NCBI GenBank assembly: GCA_964188305.1 | Contig: OZ076887.1 | Source: Podarcis bocagei | Taxonomy: Eukaryota | Length of the DNA stretch: 64,000 nt | Reading direction: 5' to 3' (one strand) | Part shown: positions 4,509-53,707 of the stretch, one piece after another | Position numbering within the stretch: the stretch's first letter is position 1 | How the letters are laid out: each line of letters opens with the position of its first letter | Position numbers and translations under genes: made by a program | The notes under the pieces: model-generated | Databases searched by the model: none | What the model was told of the DNA's origin: nothing | The model's input: only the letters and a program-made list of their open reading frames with translations

Positions 4509-4944
4509 CACTGACCACTGAGACTTACTCCCAATCAACACCCTGTGTTGATTTTAATCACATGAGCAAGGCAGCACAGGGGCAGACTGACAACCACTGG
4601 ATTTAGAGACCTGATTTCCCAGGGCTGCAAAAGCAGAGGATGCTCCCCGCTTCAGCAAACTGTCCTTTGAATCATGGAGGGTTGTAAAGATTGGCAAAGG
4701 AGATGTGCTGAAGTGTGATGGCAATCACACGGGCCAGCTTTCCCCGACCTGGTGCCCTCCAGATGTTTTGGACTACAACTCCCATAAGCCGCAGCTAGCA
4801 TGGCCAATGATGAGAAATAGCTGACTGCAGTTCAGAACAGCTGGAGGTTAGGGAAGACTGCCAAAGGCTAATGGTCTGATTTGAACACTACCACCACCAA
4901 CAACCACATGGATTCTCTGTGTTACCTGTTTTAAGCAGCTGGAG

Positions 4945-5071
4945 TCATGCTGGCCACATGACCCAGAAAACTGTCCACTTTCCCTCGGCCTGAAAGTGAG
5001 ATGAACGCCGCAACCCCAGAGTCGCATTTGACTGGATTTAACCATCCAGGGGTCCTTTATCTTTACCTTTA
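4945..5071 (+). mobile_element. Sauria SINE 3' fragment
   Basis: GTCATGCTGGCCACATGACC..GAGATGA.CGCCGCAACCCC..GGGGTCCTTTATCTTTACCTTTA tail. Confidence 0.8.
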
Positions 5072-5280
5072 CAGTGGTACCTCTGGTTACAAACTTAATT
5101 CGTTCTGGAGGTCCATTCTTAACCTGAAACTGTTCTTAACCTGAGGTACCACTTTAGCTAATGGGGCCTCCCGCTGCTACTGTGCCACCGGCACACGATT
5201 TCTGTCCTCATCCTGGGACAAAGTTCTTAACCCAAGGTACTACTTCCAGGATAGCGGAGCCTGTAACCCAAGGTGTTTGT
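5072..5280. mobile_element. Tc1/mariner (Tigger-like) MITE, right end missing
   Basis: Starts TA|CAGTGGTACCTC; body matches 60516-60757. Confidence 0.75.
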
Positions 5281-6500
5281 GCCATTTACTAGTCCAAGAC
5301 AACAAACACAGTGTGAGCTCCACTGTACAGGAACTTGTGTTTTGCTTAAATTACTTGGCAAGGCTCTGTGTACGGTGATAGCAGGGTATCAACAACATTA
5401 TTACATAATAACAGTTTGGCTCTGGAGTTAAGCTGGCCCAAGCTGATTTCCCCGCTCTTTATCTTCACAGCAGCTGTCCCCCCCTTCTCTCCTGAGCTTC
5501 ACAAGCTGCAGTGTACCCACTTCAAAACGTGGCCCCAAACCTCAGCGCAACATTTTCAGGGGACTAGAAAGCTGCCATGGGAAGGAATGTATGGGACTGC
5601 TTGCTTCTGGCAGCCCTAATGCACACACTTAACTCCGGATCTGACCCATGTCATTTTTCAATTCATTTTTGATATGATGATGTGAAAGAACAGGGAAGCG
5701 GAAGATATAGTCAAATCAGCTTCATCCAATTTCTCCAAGTTAAAGTTTGATCAAATATTTACCTTTGCTAGCCAACAAAACAAAACAAAAAACGTAATTT
5801 GATCCAGCATCAGAACCATTGCACAGTGAAGTTGTGGGCAGGATTTGAAATATAAGCAGTGAATTACTGAAAGTACTAATGAGAGTGAAGTTTACATAAT
5901 AAAAACAGATCTATTGCAAAACAGCTAAAAAACAAACATAAAGAAAGGAGGGGTGGAAAGTCAAGAAGAAATAATAATAAATTATTATTATGTTTGGAGA
6001 AAACTATATATGATGATAAATGTCTTGGAATATTTTTTTGAGATTTAACAACAATGATACATATATTTAAAAAGAAGCTTTACACAGTATAGCATCAGTT
6101 CACTAATACGATGCAACAGGATTAAAGATGGACTGCAAGTAAAACCTACGTTTTTTTATAGGATATAGAATACATTTTGTTTGCACAGAAAGGATATCTG
6201 TTTTTTGTATTTGACACGGGTTAAAGTGGGATTTAATACTAACATCTGACTAGGTGGTAACTGTACTCTCGCTGGGGTGTATTCTACTTGTGTTGGAAGG
6301 GCTGTGTGTGAAATCCCAAATTATATCTAAATTGAAATCAATCAATCTGTATTTATCTAGAAAGGAAGGTTGCAATGATGCAATATATGAAGCTTCACTG
6401 AAGACAGGATCTTTGAGTAAAGTCCTTGAAGAAATCCCCCATAAAGCTGGACACCTTCAACATAAAACATGGATAAATTTCATTACAGCTTTTATTTTAC

Positions 6501-33760: not shown

Positions 33761-33893
33761 CCACAGAATTGCAGAGTTGGGACTGTGAAGGTCGTCTAAT
33801 CCAATCCCTGCAATGCAGGAATCTTTCACCCAACGCGAGACTTGAACCCACGACCCTAAGATTAAGAATCTTGTGCTCTACCGACTGAGCTAT
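33761..33893 (-). mobile_element. tRNA-Lys-derived SINE with a CR1 3' tail
   Basis: Reverse strand TAGCTCAGTCGGTAGAGCACAAGATTCTTAATCTTAGGGTCGTGGGTTCAAG.. then GATTCCTGCATTGCAGGGATTGGATTAGACGACC..CCAACTCTGCAATTCTGTG, which matches the CR1 end at 30825-30895. Confidence 0.8.
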
Positions 33894-44469: not shown

Positions 44470-45620
44470 CGTATTTTTTGCTCTATAGGACGCACTTTTC
44501 CCCCTCCAAAAATGAAGGGGAAATGTGTGTGCGTCCTATGGAGCGAATGCAGGCTCCTTGGCTTCGCGGCGACGCGCCTGTCCTGGAAGTTGGAGGAGGA
44601 ACAGAAGGGTCTCCTTCTGTTCAGCTTCGCTGAAGGGTGCTGCGCCTTTTCCCTCTCTGCGCAGCGCCTCTCCTGTGAAGGAGAGGCGCTGCGCAGAGAG
44701 AGAGAGAGAAGGTGCAGCGCCCCTTGAGCAATGCGCTTATCAAGCGAAGCCCGAGGAGGAACAGAAGGGTCTCCTTCTGTTCCTTCTCCAGCTTCGCTGA
44801 AGGGCGCTGCGCCTTCTCCCTCTCTGCGCAGCGCCTCTCCTGTGAAGCAGAGGCGCTGCGCAGAGAGAGAGAGAGAAGGCGCAGCGCCCCTTGAGCGACT
44901 CGCCTGTCATGCGAAGCCGGAGGAGGAACGGAAGGGACTCCTTCGGTTCCTCCTCCCGCTTCGCAGCGACGTGCCTGTCCAGCGAAGCCCGAGGAGGAAC
45001 AGAAGGGTCTCCTTCTGTTCCTTCTCCAGCGTTGCTGAAGGGGCGCTGCACCCTCTCCCTCTCTGCACAGCGCCTCTCCTGTGAAGGAGAGGCGCTGCGC
45101 AGAGAGAGAGAGAGAGAAGGCGCAGCGCCCCTTGAACGACGCGCCTGCCATGCGAAGCCGGAGGAGGAACAGAAGGGACTCCTTCTGTTCCTCCTCCCGC
45201 TTCGCAGAGATGCGCCTGTCCAGCGAAGCCCGAGGAGGAACAGAAGGGTCTCCTTCTGTTCCTTCTCCAGCTTCGCTGAAGGGTGCTGTGCCTTCTCCCT
45301 CTCTGCGCAGCACCTTTCCTGTGAAGGAGGGGTGCTGCACAGAGAGAGAGAAGGCACAGTGCCCCTTCAGCGACGCGTCTGTCCTGGCTTCTGCTTTAAC
45401 CCTGCGCAGCCTCTTTGGGCAGGGGGAGCCTTCATCCCGCTGCCCTGAAGAGGCTTGGCGGGGTTACCCCAGAAGCCAGAACAGCCACACGGTATCCCAG
45501 AAGCCAGATCCCTCTTGCTGTTCTGGCTTCTGGGGTTCAGAATAATTTTTTCTTGTTTTCCGCCTCCCAAAACTAGGTGCGCCCTATGGTCCGGTGCGCC
45601 CTATGGTGCGAAAAATAGGG
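44470..45620. mobile_element. Tc1/mariner (pogo/Tc2-like) non-autonomous element with an expanded internal array
   Basis: TA|CGTATTTTTTGCTCTATAGGACGCAC ... GTGCGCCCTATGGTGCGAAAAATAGGG|TA. Confidence 0.75.
44560..45385. repeat. GC/CpG-rich tandem array (~240-bp period) built from palindromic hairpin modules
   Basis: Module CAGCGAAGCCCGAGGAGGAACAGAAGG-GTCT-CCTTCTGTTCC..GCTTCGCTG recurs at ~44742, 44980 and 45221, with a degenerate copy at ~44585. Confidence 0.92.
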
Positions 45621-46650: not shown

Positions 46651-46691
<41 letters not shown>

Positions 46692-46703
46692 CAGATAGAC
46701 AGA
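46650..46703. repeat. (GATA)/(GACA)n microsatellite
   Basis: Direct reading. Confidence 0.95.
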
Positions 46704-46818
46704 CTATCATCTAACAAAACAAAGTTTAAATTCTCATAGCAAAATGTTTCAACTTCCGCCTTCATTAATTGTTCTGATAAAAAAGAAGCCGTTCCTGTGG
46801 TGACAGGTACACAGTTTT

Positions 46819-47234
46819 TGTTCAGTTTCGGTTTCAGTTTCTGTTAATTGGTTCTCGTGGGAAACTTGCAGATTCTAGCTTCACCAATTAACTCCAGCTG
46901 GTGTCAATTTACTCTTGGCAGAAAGCCCAGGTCTGCTTGACCTAGAAACTACTCACTCTGATTGGTTAACGAGCAGCACTCAACTCTGTTATCTAGGGAT
47001 TGCTAGCACAGTTTGATGTGAGGTGTGTTAGGAGTTAGAAGTGCTGTGTATGGTTATGAGAGAGAAAGAAAGATAGGATTTATTTTTTCCTTTTAATAAA
47101 TCCTGTAAATAGTTATTCTGAGTCTAGCTGACTAGTCATTACTGCCGCAACTAGCTTCTTCGCTGTGCAGGAAAACTCTGCTACGTTTGGGCTAAAGCCA
47201 ATAGGGCTATGCCTGACACTCCAAAGTTCCATGA
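46819..47234 (+). repeat. 5' LTR of the Copia element
   Basis: TGTTCAG...CCATGA; direct repeat of 51477-51892 with mismatches at 47002/51660 and 47074/51732; AATAAA at 47095; reverse CCAAT box near 46960. Confidence 0.97.
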
Positions 47235-47258
47235 GGTTATGGGCATTGTGCTGCCAGC
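47235..47258 (+). promoter_or_regulatory. Primer-binding site for the 5' half of tRNAiMet, interrupted by 9 nt
   Basis: GGTTATGGGC[ATTGTGCTG]CCAGC; removing the bracketed bases gives GGTTATGGGCCCAGC, complementary to the tRNAiMet anticodon arm (Drosophila copia/Ty5-type priming). Confidence 0.85.
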
Positions 47259-47469
47259 CTGAGTTGCGGTGGTGTCAGCATCAACGGCGTTGGTTCCAGT
47301 AGTTCCAGAAGTTGTTGTTCCTGGCTGGTTCCTGACCGTGGTGAGCTGGTGACGCAGCGGACTCAAGGACAACAGCTGCAGCGTGTGAGTGCTGGGTGCT
47401 GTGGTTCCTGTTTTCTCTCTCGGTGGTCGTGAGTAGCTGGTTCCGGGTTCCAGGGACATCGCTCTCAAG

Positions 47470-50400
47470 ATGGCCTCACAACCAGTTCAGATGGCTTTTG
47501 AGCGTCTGAATGACTCCAATTACTTGCTGTGGTCGGAACGCATGCAGGCAGTGCTGCAGAGGGATCGTCTCTGGCAAGTGGTGAGTAAGTTTCCTACGAA
47601 GCCTGATGATGAAGACCTCGATAAAGACCAAAGAGCAAGGGCCACAATTGTCTTGGGGCTGGAAGATTCCCAGTTGCCGTATGTGAGGGGAATCAAGACA
47701 GCTAGAGGTGTGTGGCAAGCACTTAAAGAACTCCATGTGCGTGAGACAGCGGTTTCCAAGCTGTTCATTCGCAAGGCATTGTACAAGGCAATGTTACAGC
47801 CTGGGGTTACAATGCAGGAACACCTACACAGTTTACAGTTAAAGTTTGTTGCGCTACAGGAAAGAGACTGTGCATTAGACCAGCAGGAGAAGGTGGCTAT
47901 TATTTTGAGTTCTCTCCCGGAAAGCTGGGATAATTTAGTTTTGTCTCTAGAAGGCATGCAGGAGCATGATTTATCAGTCAGTTACGTTACTGGGCGTTTG
48001 ATTGAAGAATGGCAGAAGAGGCAAGAAAGGTCGTTGGCTGCAGAGGCTTCTACAGGCGGGCGGTTTGGAAGGAGTTCTCATGCCGTACCAGAGGTGAAGC
48101 AAGAGCAGCGTACCGGTGAGGAGTCAGCGTTTGCTGTTAGGCGTTGTTTCCGATGTGGGTCTTCAGCGCATCTAAAACGACAATGTCCGGAGTTGGTCAA
48201 GTCTCAGTTGCCGGTGCAGGAGCAGAGACGAGATCAGCAGCAGCAGCAGCAGCAGCGTAAAAGGAAATTCTTCAAACAAAAACAGTCGGCTCAGCTGGTG
48301 ACCGGCGAGGTCAAGATTGCTGATGAGAAACAAGCGGTCTGGGTGGTCGATTCGGGAGCGTCTCGCCACATCGTGAATTCAGATGAATTGTTTGTTTCCA
48401 AGAACTCAGCACAGCACAGCCAGGTGGCTCTAGCAGACGGAAGTACATCCGAAGTGATTTCGGGGGGTGCAGTTTTTGTTCCTTGTCTTCGTGAATGCCT
48501 GCAAAATGTACTTTGTGTGCCGTCATTAAGGAGCAATCTGATGTCTGTAGATTGTTTGCTGAAAGCTGGGTTTAAAGTGTATTTTGAAGGAGACAGTTGC
48601 ATTATTAAGAAGGCTGGTGAGATTTTAGGCACTGCTAAGTCAGAGGGAGGCTTGTTTTGGCTTAAAGCAGGATCTCAAGTTGCAGCAGTAGTCAGTAAAT
48701 CTCAGCCTGCAGTGAATAACAAAGCTATACATGACAACTGTGTGCACTTATTGCATAGGAAAATGGGGCATGCTTGCTGGAAAAGTGTACTAAAAATGTC
48801 TGAATTGGCTGATGGGGGTAATTTAAAGAGTTGTAACAAGTACCTTGATTGTAATGTTTGTAAAAAGGTTAAAACCCACAGAGTCTCTTACCCCAGAAGT
48901 GACAGAGTTAGTGAGGCACCGCTACAGCTGGTTCACATGGACGTAATTGGTCCATTTGCTGTAAGCAGGGGTGGATCGCGTTTTTCATTAACAATTGTGG
49001 ATGACGCCACGCGTTACTCCTGGGTTTATCCCATGAAAAATAAGGGTGACGTGTTCACTAAGTTTAAAGGCTGGGTGGCATCTGTGGAAAGATTTCTGTC
49101 CATTAAACTCAAAAGGATTCAGACAGACAGAGGTGGCGAATTTATGTCAAATGCCTTTAAAGATTGGTTACAAAAGCGTGGCATTGGGCATAGAAAAACG
49201 AACGTTTTTTCCCCAGAGGAGAATGGCGTTGCAGAGCGAAAAAACAGATCTTTACAAGATATGATGTTTGCCATGCTTGATGATGCTGATTTACCCATGT
49301 CTTATTGGGGGGAGAGCATGCTCACTGCGTGTTATCTCCAAAATAGGCTCTTTCACCAAACAATAGGTACAACCCCGTACTTTAAATTGTTTCAGAAAAA
49401 ACCTAAAATTGACCATTTGCATGTGTTTGGATCAAAAGCCTGGGTATTAATTCCGAAACAAATGAGAAAGAAGGGAGATCCTAAGACCAAACAGTTAGTG
49501 TTTGTGGGTTACCAGGAGCTGGGAAAAGGTTTCCGCTTTGCTGAAGGGACAAATGGCATTGTGATCTCCAGGAATGCCAGTTTTTGTGAACATAGTGGCT
49601 GGGAGAGACTACATGCCAATACTGAGGTTTGGTTTGAACCTTCCCAGGAGCTTTATGACTCTGAAGGTAGACACAGAGAGTCAGAGTCTGAGGGGGAGGA
49701 AAGTTCAGATAAGAGCTCTCAGGAAAGTGAAGTTGCTAAGCAACAAAAGAGAGGTCGTAGTTCTGAGGAGGAAAGTGGGTCAGAAGAAAAATTTTCTCCC
49801 AGAAGATCTAAAAGACAAAACAAAGGAGTGCCTCCGGTGCGTTTTTCCCCAGATACTGCAAATGTGTTTAGTGTAAGTGCAGAACCCAAGAGTTTTCAGG
49901 AGGTGTTAAAGTTACCAAAAGAGGAGGCAGAGCGCTGGAAACAGGCAATGGAGGAAGAGATGTCCTCTCTGAATGAGCACAAGGTTTTTACACCAGTAGC
50001 AGCGCCTGAGGGGGCAAAGATTGTAGGCTGCAGGTGGGTGTACAAACTTAAACCTCTGGTGACAGGAGAGTACAAATACAAAGCTCGTTTAGTTGCTCAA
50101 GGATATTCTCAGAGGCCTGGAAAAGATTATGACGAGACTTTTTCCCCTACTGCCAAGGGGGACAGTGTAAGGCTGATTCTAACGCTTGGAGCAAAGAGAA
50201 AACTCCTGTTAAACCATTTTGACATTCAGACTGCATATTTACATGCACCAATATCAGAAGACCTGTATCTAGCCGAACCGCCTGGTTATGAGACAGGTTC
50301 CAATAGAGTGTTGAAATTAAACAAAGCTCTATACGGTCTCAAACAGGCTGCAAGATCTTGGAACAAATGTTTCCATGAGGCCTTAGTGTCATTTGGTTTC

Positions 50401-51423
50401 AAGCAGAGTACAGCTGACAATTGTGTTTATGTACGTGGTACAGGCAGTGATCAAGAGTTTTGTCTGATTTATGTAGATGATGTATTGTATGCCTGCAAAA
50501 CAGATAAACAAACTAAAAGATTTGCCAAGCAATTGTCCAGTAAGTTCAAAGTGAAGGACTTAGGCCCGGTTAGGACATATCTAGGGTTGGAAGTGTGCTG
50601 GGCCCAAGATGGCAGCTGCCTAATTAGTCAGCAGAACAAAGTTAAGCAACTACTGACTACATACAGGATGCAGGATTGCAAAGGGGCAGCGGTGCCTATG
50701 GATCCAGGTTTCATAAAAACACTTCATACAGATGAGAGTCCTGAATTTGAACACCCTGATGTATATCACTCTGTAATTGGAAGTTTATTGTATATAGCAC
50801 AGTGGTCCAGACCTGATATTAGCTATGCAGTAGGCATATTAAGTAGATTGGTCTCAAAACCCACACTAAATGCCTGGAAAGGGGTAAAACAAGTTCTGAG
50901 GTATCTCAAACAGACAATTGGCTATATGTTACAATTAAATTCTTCCGAGGACGAAATGTTGAGTTGCTACTGTGATAGTGACTGGGGAAATTTGCCAGAT
51001 AGAAAATCTGTCACAGGACTAGTCATAATGGTCGGTGGAGCTTTAATCAGCTGGCGGTCACGCAAGCAAGACGTTGTAAGTGTGTCATCAACGGAATCAG
51101 AGTACGCCGCATTGAGTGAATTGTGCAACGAGGTGATTTATTTCAAGCATTTGTTAACAGATTTAAATGTAAATTGTGGAGAACCAGTACAAGTTTACAT
51201 TGATAATCAAGCTTGTATAACCTTAAGTAAAACAGAGGGTTTCAAATCGCGTTCAAAACATATCTCTGTAAAATACCAAAATGTACGTTGCTGTGTACAA
51301 GACAATGTAATCACCTGTACTTATGTGTCAAGTGAAGAAAATGTAGCAGATGTGTTAACTAAACCATTGGCAAAGGTAAAGAACAAGCGAATGTGCAAGG
51401 GTTTAGGTTTGCTGGAAAAATGA
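47470..51423 (+). CDS. Copia Gag-Pol polyprotein (1317 aa): Gag, CCHC knuckle, aspartic protease, integrase, reverse transcriptase, RNase H
   Basis: CFRCGSSAHLKRQC knuckle; WVVDSGASRH protease; HRKMGH..CNVC zinc finger; D-D-E in HMD/QTDRGGEF/NGVAER; GKGF (GKGY-like); RT KARLVAQG, LYGLKQA, YVDD; RNase H CDSDW, SSTESEY, ADVLTK; no stops or frameshifts. Confidence 0.98.
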   Translation: MASQPVQMAFERLNDSNYLLWSERMQAVLQRDRLWQVVSKFPTKPDDEDLDKDQRARATIVLGLEDSQLPYVRGIKTARGVWQALKELHVRETAVSKLFIRKALYKAMLQPGVTMQEHLHSLQLKFVALQERDCALDQQEKVAIILSSLPESWDNLVLSLEGMQEHDLSVSYVTGRLIEEWQKRQERSLAAEASTGGRFGRSSHAVPEVKQEQRTGEESAFAVRRCFRCGSSAHLKRQCPELVKSQLPVQEQRRDQQQQQQQRKRKFFKQKQSAQLVTGEVKIADEKQAVWVVDSGASRHIVNSDELFVSKNSAQHSQVALADGSTSEVISGGAVFVPCLRECLQNVLCVPSLRSNLMSVDCLLKAGFKVYFEGDSCIIKKAGEILGTAKSEGGLFWLKAGSQVAAVVSKSQPAVNNKAIHDNCVHLLHRKMGHACWKSVLKMSELADGGNLKSCNKYLDCNVCKKVKTHRVSYPRSDRVSEAPLQLVHMDVIGPFAVSRGGSRFSLTIVDDATRYSWVYPMKNKGDVFTKFKGWVASVERFLSIKLKRIQTDRGGEFMSNAFKDWLQKRGIGHRKTNVFSPEENGVAERKNRSLQDMMFAMLDDADLPMSYWGESMLTACYLQNRLFHQTIGTTPYFKLFQKKPKIDHLHVFGSKAWVLIPKQMRKKGDPKTKQLVFVGYQELGKGFRFAEGTNGIVISRNASFCEHSGWERLHANTEVWFEPSQELYDSEGRHRESESEGEESSDKSSQESEVAKQQKRGRSSEEESGSEEKFSPRRSKRQNKGVPPVRFSPDTANVFSVSAEPKSFQEVLKLPKEEAERWKQAMEEEMSSLNEHKVFTPVAAPEGAKIVGCRWVYKLKPLVTGEYKYKARLVAQGYSQRPGKDYDETFSPTAKGDSVRLILTLGAKRKLLLNHFDIQTAYLHAPISEDLYLAEPPGYETGSNRVLKLNKALYGLKQAARSWNKCFHEALVSFGFKQSTADNCVYVRGTGSDQEFCLIYVDDVLYACKTDKQTKRFAKQLSSKFKVKDLGPVRTYLGLEVCWAQDGSCLISQQNKVKQLLTTYRMQDCKGAAVPMDPGFIKTLHTDESPEFEHPDVYHSVIGSLLYIAQWSRPDISYAVGILSRLVSKPTLNAWKGVKQVLRYLKQTIGYMLQLNSSEDEMLSCYCDSDWGNLPDRKSVTGLVIMVGGALISWRSRKQDVVSVSSTESEYAALSELCNEVIYFKHLLTDLNVNCGEPVQVYIDNQACITLSKTEGFKSRSKHISVKYQNVRCCVQDNVITCTYVSSEENVADVLTKPLAKVKNKRMCKGLGLLEK

Positions 51424-51476
51424 TCTCCTACATAGGTGTATTTGGTGTTAATTGTTCAGCAGAATCTGTGAGGGGG

Positions 51477-51892
51477 TGTTCAGTTTCGGTTTCAGTTTCT
51501 GTTAATTGGTTCTCGTGGGAAACTTGCAGATTCTAGCTTCACCAATTAACTCCAGCTGGTGTCAATTTACTCTTGGCAGAAAGCCCAGGTCTGCTTGACC
51601 TAGAAACTACTCACTCTGATTGGTTAACGAGCAGCACTCAACTCTGTTATCTAGGGATTACTAGCACAGTTTGATGTGAGGTGTGTTAGGAGTTAGAAGT
51701 GCTGTGTATGGTTATGAGAGAGAAAGAAAGAGAGGATTTATTTTTTCCTTTTAATAAATCCTGTAAATAGTTATTCTGAGTCTAGCTGACTAGTCATTAC
51801 TGCCGCAACTAGCTTCTTCGCTGTGCAGGAAAACTCTGCTACGTTTGGGCTAAAGCCAATAGGGCTATGCCTGACACTCCAAAGTTCCATGA
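51477..51892 (+). repeat. 3' LTR of the Copia element
   Basis: Follows the polypurine tract; ends immediately before the GTTTT TSD. Confidence 0.97.
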
Positions 51893-53707
51893 GTTTTGAG
51901 GATAGAAGCTCAAAGTTCTATATCCACCGCCTCAGAAACAGCACCATTTTTATCATAGCAACTGAAGGCGGAAGACGAATCATTTTGCTATAATAATTTA
52001 AAACTTCTGTTTTGTTAGTCATGGTAATAAATTTATGCTTTCAGTGATCAGCTGCATCCCACCAAGATTGAAAACAAACTTGTCCAAAGTTGATGCTTTC
52101 ATTATTCTGTCTCCCCGTGTCTGTGTGCGTTTAAAGGAGGGAAGGGAGAAGGGAGAAGAGGGAGGGCGAGATAAAGAGTTTTAGGGGGAAGGAAGGAAGG
52201 AAGATCGCCATTTAGCTAGATAACAAATTCTGCCTTCTGGCAATGCCAAATAGCTCACAAATATGACTATTATCAGGATGAAAGCGAAGAGGGAGAGAAG
52301 GTGACAACAGTCTGACAGCCAAGAATATAGCAGGACGAGATGTTGCTGGAAATATAGGCTGACCCTGAACTCACATTAAGAGGAAAATACATTTTCAAAA
52401 TGTTAGTGCTTCATCCACTGTCGGCCCTTTTTTCCTGTCCTCCCACTCTCACCTTTGTGATTCGGCCGTGCTGCTCTGTATTATCAGGAAGAAACCTGTC
52501 CTCTGTCAAACCTCCTCGTAAAACACATTCTTTAAAGGTACTTTTGCCAAACTGGCAAAAACCTCCAGAAATTTTGGGCTACAACTCCCATCAGCCCCAG
52601 CCAGCAGTGGTTGGAGGTGATGAGTAGGGCTTGCTAACCTTTTTTGAACCAGTGGACACATTTCAAACTTTGCTGGGGCCACCAGTCACAAAATCGTTGG
52701 ATATTTTCTCTCTCTGTATGAGAATCATTTGTTCCAGAAACAAGGAAGAAGTTTCAGGAAGCAGTAGAAGGCTGAGATTGTGTTGTCTATGCAAGGACGT
52801 TTTCTGTGGGAACTGGTTTTTGGACATGCACAGTGTGACAGGAAGTACCAATAACGGTTCTGTGAAACTTGTTGTAACTTCTTGTGAGTCTCTTGCTTGC
52901 GCCTTGCTATTAGAGAAGCAGAGACAGAGAGTCTTGGACTCTTGTTGGACTCTAAGCATGCCTTGACCATGGCAGTGGTGAATGTCTGTATATATTTGCT
53001 ACCAATTTGCTTTTATGCCTGTCAAGTAAACTTCTATACTTGACTGAATCTTTATGGCGTCCATGAGTGTCTATTGCCTACTGTGTGTACCTTCAACCCC
53101 AAAGACGCTTCCAAGGAAGGAGCTGCGTTGAGATGTAACTCTTCTGAGTATGGATCGTGCACACACGATCAGCAAAAGTGATGTCAGACCCAATCCTTCT
53201 AAATCATCCATAGAGGTTGATGGATTGATCCAACAAAAATGGCTGCAATGGTGTCTGCCATAATACAAAATGGCTGGCATGGAGAGTGCAGCCTAACATA
53301 TAATCAGAGAGACAACCACCCCTAACAGCTTTATGCTTACCATAGGAAGCCAGCAATGTTCAGCTGGTCCTGACGGCAAAGGTAACACAATATTGATTAC
53401 ACACACATGCTGATGCTGTCTAATAACAACAGTACCAGGAAAAATATACAAGCTGGCCACATCAAACTCGCTCTCATTTCACGTAAATCATTTAGAAGGT
53501 ACCTGCACACTTTACTCCATGACTTACTTTCTAGAAGGGCTGGAGTAGGATGATATACCACCCGGAAGTCCATATCATGATATCGGTTTCATAGTTTTTG
53601 AGCTAGCAATATATCGCATATCATGATGTGTGTGCGCGCGCTATGCAAAAATCACAATGTGGGGGAAAACGTGAAACCAGCCAATGCCTCTACATATCTC
53701 CATCCTT

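Follow-up and report, generated by a model that had tools for sequence, protein, structure and literature searches.

Since 1986 it has been clear that a 5' fragment of a tRNA serves copia-type elements as primer, and copia and Ty5 are described with a single contiguous primer-binding site (PBS) of about 14-15 nucleotides (nt). Drosophila copia and yeast Ty5 both prime on an internal region of the initiator methionine tRNA, tRNAiMet (Kikuchi 1986; Ke 1999, as cited in PMC10886601 and PMC5371799). The window analyzed here, a 64,000-nt stretch of Podarcis bocagei contig OZ076887.1 (assembly GCA_964188305.1), contains at 46819-51892 a complete, intact and young Ty1/copia (Pseudoviridae) long terminal repeat (LTR) retrotransposon. 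As judged from its sequence and from folding models, the 5' leader of this element probably contains a binding site in two parts for the 5' half of tRNAiMet, a reading to which we assign a probability of about 0.6. The element shares with copia and Ty5 the superfamily and a PBS that adjoins the LTR, complements the anticodon arm (GGTTATGGG...) and implies a primer ending at nt 39. It differs from them in that the PBS core is 8-10 nt and often interrupted, and in that the unique 5' region of the LTR (U5) adds complementarity to tRNA nt 1-22.

Additional primer contacts are known from other elements. In Ty1 the boxes are reportedly found downstream of the PBS and contact the T and D arms of a full-length tRNA that primes from its 3' end, whereas those described here are upstream, in U5, and would contact the D arm and the 5' strand of the acceptor stem in the 5' half. 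The likeness is that the extended PBS of Ty1 joins a 10-nt PBS to boxes 0, 1 and 2.1 for other tRNAiMet arms, including the D arm (Friant 1996, as cited in PMC5371799). The bipartite 5'-3' PBS of Ty3 is also similar, since its 8-nt PBS needs a distant second segment and the D arm contacts the element RNA (Gabus 1998, as given in PMC5371799); the second segment of Ty3 is about 4.8 kb away, in the unique 3' region (U3) at the RNA 3' end, whereas here both parts are found within about 130 nt and are connected by a local stem. Retroviruses likewise have a long-range stem that encloses the PBS and a U5 that pairs with the primer outside the PBS (Rous sarcoma virus, RSV, U5-TpsiC; type 1 human immunodeficiency virus, HIV-1, primer activation signal and A-rich loop; PMC5371799). 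However, their primer is a whole tRNA that pairs through its 3' 18 nt, and the extra contacts, with the T arm or the anticodon loop, are short (about 6-8 nt), whereas here about 21 nt of U5 are complementary to the tRNA's 5' third.

Half-tRNA priming (copia, Ty5), extra primer contacts (Ty1, Ty3, RSV, HIV-1, feline immunodeficiency virus and gypsy) and U5-leader stems are already known. In the literature searched, no description was found of U5 complementarity to the tRNA 5' third in a half-tRNA-primed element, nor of a junction of the kind proposed below. Through this arrangement, the extended or bipartite PBS principle known from Ty1, Ty3, RSV and HIV-1 would also apply to half-tRNA priming and in a vertebrate Copia; the arrangement bears on how the half-tRNA fragment gets selected, unfolded and cut.

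Complementarity of U5 and PBS to tRNAiMet

The leader features of the element are as follows.

46819-47234, + strand: 5' LTR, 416 bp, starting TGTTCAG and ending CCATGA
47096-47101, + strand: AATAAA, the sole canonical poly(A) signal in the LTR, read from the sequence
47127-47132, + strand: outer 5' arm of the closing stem, GCTGAC
47141-47152, + strand: inner 5' arm of the closing stem, ACTGCCGCAACT
47154-47158, + strand: U5 box 1, GCTTC, complement of tRNAiMet nt 18-22
47161-47168, + strand: U5 box 2, CGCTGTGC, complement of tRNAiMet nt 10-17 with one G.U pair
47169-47174, + strand: AGGAAA, a 6-nt bulge facing tRNA G9
47175-47183, + strand: U5 box 3, ACTCTGCT plus A, complement of tRNAiMet nt 1-8
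47184-47234, + strand: linker from box 3 to the PBS, 51 nt, the remainder of U5
47235-47244, + strand: PBS core, GGTTATGGGC, complement of tRNAiMet nt 30-39
47245-47253, + strand: interruption of the PBS, 9 nt, ATTGTGCTG (CCAGGCTG in locus L010)
47254-47258, + strand: second part of the PBS, CCAGC, complement of tRNAiMet nt 25-29
47262-47279, + strand: 3' arm of the closing stem, AGTTGCGGTGGT plus GTCAGC

Since the AATAAA at 47096-47101 lies upstream of the boxes, we infer that they belong to U5. All 10 of the 10 strings quoted in the original prediction were found where it had placed them, and the vertebrate tRNAiMet sequence that it had used was correct (PMC8216282). Complementarity of U5 to tRNA nt 1-22 was confirmed, but two of the predicted boxes, GCTTC (nt 18-22) and TTCGCTGTGC (nt 10-19), both claimed tRNA nt 18-19. 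In the best non-overlapping register, GCUUC (nt 18-22) is followed by a UU bulge, CGCUGUGC (nt 10-17), an AGGAAA bulge and ACUCUGCU (nt 1-8). This register pairs 21 of 22 nt, and the sole free base is G9, an m1G in vertebrate tRNAiMet and unable to pair. T47159 is able to wobble-pair with G17, and relatives carry C at that place.

The duplex of site 47153-47183 with tRNAiMet nt 1-23 was calculated with RNAduplex at -31.4 kcal/mol, the top of about 900 windows in the element, where the next-best site for tRNA nt 1-24 reached -24.2 kcal/mol. Among 4264 windows on the + strand of the 64-kb window the U5 site ranked third. Gapped local alignment of the complement of tRNA nt 1-24 with U5 gave p values of about 0.005-0.03 against dinucleotide shuffles, varying with gap costs. 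When tRNA nt 40-75 was used as the query, U5 was not preferred and no sign of T-arm contacts was found.

Relatives were gathered by word and profile searches with the polyprotein and Gag, followed by contig look-ups. Locus L009 (92% DNA identity to the window) and locus L010 from Podarcis lilfordi (85%) belong to the same family, L010 representing an older subfamily. Locus L002, also from P. lilfordi, carries two other elements, E1 and E2, and E2 represents a Podarcis sister family with 60% Gag identity to the window. L001 and L003 form one family with about 42% polyprotein identity to the window, and L005 has 40%; more distant families were found in L004 (36%), L007 (38%), L011 (37%) and L012 (38%). 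In a maximum-likelihood tree built without E1 and E2, the window family, L001 and L005 formed a clade with 100/100 support and a long stem branch, while L007, L011 and L004 fell in a different clade and L012 stood apart. Because the path lengths among the window family, L001 and L005 were 1.8-2.3 substitutions per protein site, neutral non-coding sequence is expected to have been erased.

When U5 and leader were aligned across families with MAFFT, the PBS alone was aligned and the boxes were misplaced; comparison between families was therefore made by way of how each pairs with the tRNA. In E2 the best site of the whole element for tRNA nt 1-24 was in U5 (-34.3, next -25.3). The U5 site was also the top of the element in L009 and L010 (-32.3) and in L001/L003 (-29.5, next about -23). 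L005 was marginal, with -24.2 vs -21.7 in a first scan and -24.0 vs -22.9 in a second, in which 12 of 120 shuffled queries gave as large a gap to the next site. The U5 match of L004 was weak (-23.9 vs -18.9), and no U5 site was found in L007, L011 and L012, which lie outside the clade. Shuffled queries reached the U5 energy in 0 of 120 cases for the window element, E2 and L003, in 4 of 120 for L005 and in 3 of 120 for L004. Of the seven families with any U5 match, six gave a better score with tRNAiMet than with the control tRNAs (elongator Met, Lys and Asp), the exception being E1, where tRNALys was slightly above tRNAiMet.

Tabulation of the pairs showed that nt 1-8 and nt 17/18-22 were paired in every box family and that the boxes were collinear. 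The place and size of the bulges varied, with 2 + 6 nt in the window element, 6 + 1 nt in E2, and one unpaired tRNA nucleotide plus a 6-nt bulge in L003. Letter differences kept the pairing (C or U opposite G5, G10, G12 and G17; A or G opposite U8); for example, GCTTCC in L009 and L010 in place of GCTTCT in the window gives a C-G pair instead of U.G. In box 3, ACTCTGCTA is identical between the window element and E2 amid U5 surroundings that cannot be aligned. The boxes are thus kept as collinear tRNA-complementary segments even in sister families with as little as about 40% polyprotein identity, as the original prediction implied, and complementarity to the primer beyond the PBS, kept among relatives, is what characterizes an extended PBS. 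Our verdict from these comparisons is that the U5 boxes would be a real and conserved extended PBS for a half-tRNA primer.

The PBS core GGTTATGGGC begins at the first base past the 5' LTR (LTR end 47234). As in half-tRNAiMet priming, the PBS adjoins the LTR, complements the tRNAiMet anticodon arm and ends at nt 39. The original prediction had described this PBS as split by a 9-nt insert. The insert was located correctly and is not private to this copy, the interruption being common to L009 and deep contig sets, and the split holds family-wide. However, the older subfamily L010 has the order GGTTATGGGCCCAG, GCTG, CCAGCC, that is, a contiguous 14-nt PBS and then the same CCAGCC; the split is therefore derived and variable, and the insert is better seen as ATTGT in place of the CCAG of the older subfamily. 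The family multiplied further with the ATTGT form. CCAGCC is retained in L005, E1 and L010, and its spacing from GGTTATGGG varies (2 nt in L005, 5 nt in E1, 9-10 nt in the window family).

Outside the clade the PBS measures 15 nt in L007, 16-17 nt in L011 and 10+4+5 nt with one-base bulges in L012. The PBS duplex with tRNA nt 23-39 was -30 kcal/mol in L007 and -34 kcal/mol in L011. In the box families it ranged from -16 to -26, with -29.2 in the older subfamily L010; in the window element it was -23.9 kcal/mol, of which the 10-nt core contributed -18.4. Since the duplexes of the box families are weaker than those of L007 and L011, the boxes accompany a weak PBS. This suggests that a weak PBS with boxes and a strong contiguous PBS without boxes are interchangeable solutions. 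The clade is conserved and evidently very successful, and an 8-10-nt PBS plus about 21 nt of U5 complementarity provides a concrete model that can be tested by mutation. The PBS of L012 (202-225) is extended downstream (GGTTATGGGC, G, CCAG, A, CACGC), and that of L011 (792-810) has 16-17 contiguous nt with a downstream extension; both lack a U5 site.

Sense copies of tRNAiMet were also detected in some leaders. In U5 of L003 (1635-1700) and L001 (4320-4385), an exact sense 18-mer (L003) or 15-mer (L001) of tRNAiMet nt 7-24 lies about 30-47 nt ahead of the PBS and is followed by CTGGACCAG, which resembles the anticodon stem without its loop. This sense copy may be an internal tRNA mimic or lock. 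In E1 (L002:4852-4891), a stretch that matches tRNA nt 12-29 in sense (p = 0.0007) comes after ATACTCTGCAAAG. In E2 (L002:5690-5702), the leader directly past the PBS is CAGATTGGCGCAG, 12 of 13 nt of which are identical to tRNA nt 3-15 (p = 0.004), and CAGATTGGCGCAG forms the 3' arm of the E2 closing stem. No significant sense copy of tRNAiMet was found in the window family (p = 0.63).

Closing stem and predicted three-way junction

The stem formed by 47127-32 with 47274-79 and by 47141-52 with 47262-73 was present in both the minimum free energy (MFE) and the centroid folds. The duplex of the flanks (32 nt before box 1 with 32 nt past the PBS) was better than 1000 of 1000 shuffles in the window element and L009, and better than 998 of 1000 in L010. 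The fold of the region as a whole was not unusually stable (z-score -0.25). T47143>C, common in other copies, changes G.U to G-C, and C47267>T changes G-C to G.U; the stem is kept in both cases. A helix of about 20 bp occurs at the same place in E2 (L002:5567-5585 with 5694-5714), has unrelated letters and was matched by 0 of 1000 shuffles. A long-range helix flanking the PBS and kept through sequence change, as expected of a U5-leader stem, is therefore found in the window family and E2. No significant helix adjoining box 1 and the PBS was detected in L005 and L003, in which long-range pairings were found farther out. The predicted stem was thus replaced helix for helix in E2, with two of three within-family changes remaining paired, but is absent from that place in L005 and L003.

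For folding with the tRNA, the linker was cut and the 5' part, the tRNA half and the 3' part were treated as three separate strands. The MFE structure was the proposed three-way junction in the window element, L009 and E2, and the complex reached -80.8 compared with -56.2 plus -14.6 for the free partners.

The results show that the complementarity exists and is conserved across the deep clade, that the stem is present and that the junction is thermodynamically plausible, and from them the following arrangement may be proposed. The interrupted PBS would pair with tRNA nt 30-39 and 25-29, and the three collinear U5 boxes, 53-81 nt upstream of the PBS, would pair with nt 1-8, 10-17 and 18-22. The long-range U5-leader stem would bring the 5' end of box 1 beside the 3' end of the PBS, so that the tRNA half could cross the three-way junction with G23 and U24 as a 2-nt hinge. 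The U5 boxes would thereby offset the weakness of the PBS duplex and melt the tRNA's acceptor and D stems.

More speculatively, sequestration of the whole 5' half could leave nt 40-75 free to refold, after which a host enzyme could cut after nt 39. In this model CAGAG (nt 40-44) would pair with the freed acceptor 3' strand and stack on the T arm to give a minihelix of the ribonuclease P (RNase P) type. When folded alone, nt 40-75 formed CAGAGG/CCUCUG stacked on the T stem, a minihelix starting from C40 with a CUACCA tail, which as a model resembles the substrate of RNase P hyperprocessing. Kikuchi's work of 1990 and 1992 is said to have described such 'hyperprocessing' of tRNAiMet by RNase P at 39/40, a cleavage that requires an altered tRNA fold, and element RNA was reportedly not invoked as the agent that refolds the tRNA. 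Here, unlike in that work, the U5 boxes and the PBS would sequester all of nt 1-39. For copia, RNase P cleavage after nt 39 on a minihelix-type substrate has been invoked in the literature, as a review states (PMC5371799). The arrangement may account for the way in which such elements retain their half-tRNA primer, and perhaps for its making. The fuller version, in which boxes, PBS and stem form a scaffold that takes up the 5' half of mature tRNAiMet so that the element directs the making of its own half-tRNA primer, we regard as unlikely. The scaffold might also replace the 3' half of the tRNA or present the tRNA for cleavage, as the original prediction supposed.

Evidence against the two-part site and alternative explanations

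Several results weigh against a two-part tRNA site. tRNALys(CTT) nt 1-24 gave -29.0 in U5 of the window element; the single-copy energy is therefore weakly specific, and one copy alone is unconvincing. In L003 the tRNA (-29.5) is a poorer partner for the boxes than the internal sense copy (-32.1). One pair of the stem is lost in L010 through G47144>T. The three-strand complex differed from complexes with shuffled tRNA 5' parts by a z-score of only -2.4, and one shuffle was better. In the plain two-strand cofold, which allows nested pairs, the tRNA remained wholly unbound because the site lies inside a stem-closed loop and binding would be a pseudoknot; the co-fold check of the original prediction was thus borne out by the three-strand model and not by this one. 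The box families share one ancestor, which implies long maintenance rather than independent origin. Finally, RNA run X23 yielded just 9 reads of 90-95% likeness, too few for a transcript start, poly(A) site or expression level.

The alternative that survived best is that the boxes persist because of another role of U5 (packaging, dimerization, 3'-end formation or strand transfer, for example), and that the tRNA complementarity is a relic of sequence copied from a primer. U5 is well conserved overall, the window and L010 differing at about 4 of 115 nt as against 85% identity across LTR and leader, and the 18-mer of L003 shows that tRNA-derived sequence does enter such LTRs. A relic should decay, however, whereas pairing to nt 1-8 and 17/18-22 persists across the path lengths given above, with spacers that cannot be aligned. 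The local hairpin formed by the window boxes is not retained in E2, and by eye, rather than in a formal test, no remnant of a complement to nt 25-39 was seen upstream of box 1 (window, E2 and L005), for which reason the idea of an old PBS absorbed into U5 was rejected. We consider the relic explanation improbable.

Still less probable is that the boxes act inside their own RNA, pairing with a tRNA mimic in U5 or leader as a lock or switch, with the tRNA not a partner. The best own-RNA partner of the L003 boxes is indeed the sense copy, and E2 and E1 carry the 12/13 leader match directly past the PBS and the D-arm match, respectively. But the window family lacks a significant sense copy, and no internal partner of the window boxes equals the tRNA (best -27.4 vs -31.4). 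Moreover, an exact tRNA mimic implies competition with the tRNA, which fits binding of tRNAiMet by the boxes rather than replacing it.

Chance, by which a 75-nt self-complementary, G+C-rich reference would find short matches in any 400-nt LTR, gains from the post hoc choice of a single-copy alignment with p of just 0.005-0.03, from two unrelated sites in the 64-kb window that score equally and from the value for tRNALys, but it is very improbable given that the same collinear site ranks first in the element for four diverged families (in a fifth by a small margin), was not found in three families from outside the clade and includes ACTCTGCTA, identical in E2 between flanks that cannot be aligned.

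The element, its copies and neighboring sequence

The remaining features of the element are listed below.

46814-46818, + strand: 5' target-site duplication GTTTT, with its partner at 51893-51897; bounds from the LTR alignment
47470-51423, + strand: intact Gag-PR-IN-RT open reading frame, 1317 amino acids, copia domain order
51470-51476, + strand: polypurine tract GAGGGGG, adjoining the 3' LTR
51477-51892, + strand: 3' LTR, with a second copy of the boxes at 51812-51840

The direct LTRs (46819-47234 and 51477-51892, 416 bp each) have 2 substitutions between them. The open reading frame contains Retrotran_gag_2 (25-188), Pol_BBD (291-368), rve (482-579) and RVT_2 (838-1077), so that integrase precedes reverse transcriptase. 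Direct LTRs, a 5-bp target duplication, a polypurine tract ahead of the 3' LTR and this domain order place the element in Ty1/copia.

No second copy of the element was found within the 64-kb window, and ARAGORN found no tRNA gene there. Exact look-up of the window polyprotein returned no record, and a metagenome scan gave a single irrelevant match (27%). The family was found at very high summed depth in contigs from sequencing runs of several organisms, and across those contigs T47143>C was the sole common variant inside 47127-47279. At window position 47079 many contigs (runs X2, X7 and X8) diverge upstream into ...GTATGCAGAAACTCTGCTGGT; these represent an LTR subfamily with a different U3, bearing another AAACTCTGCTGG motif.

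In L002 a nested insertion was observed at 4929-5700. E2, whose LTR starts from about 5220, sits 13 codons into gag of the Copia E1, which has its PBS at 4929 and its ATG at about 5181; E2 is without a 3' LTR within the L002 locus.

A partial Rfam tRNA match (39.9 bits, model positions 8-63) at window 33835-33892 on the - strand was not called by ARAGORN and is probably a tRNA-derived repeat or pseudogene. A (GACA)n microsatellite occupies window 46655-46697, about 120 bp upstream of the insertion site. A G+C-rich tandem array with periods of about 167 and 240 bp is located at window 44622-45351, and its units hold long inverted repeats, CTCTCTGCGCAGCGCC...GGCGCTGCGCAGAGAGAG. When duplexes with the tRNA were scanned, the array scored on a par with the U5 boxes (-32.2 at 44791), which is taken to be chance arising from GCGCAGCG-like palindromes.
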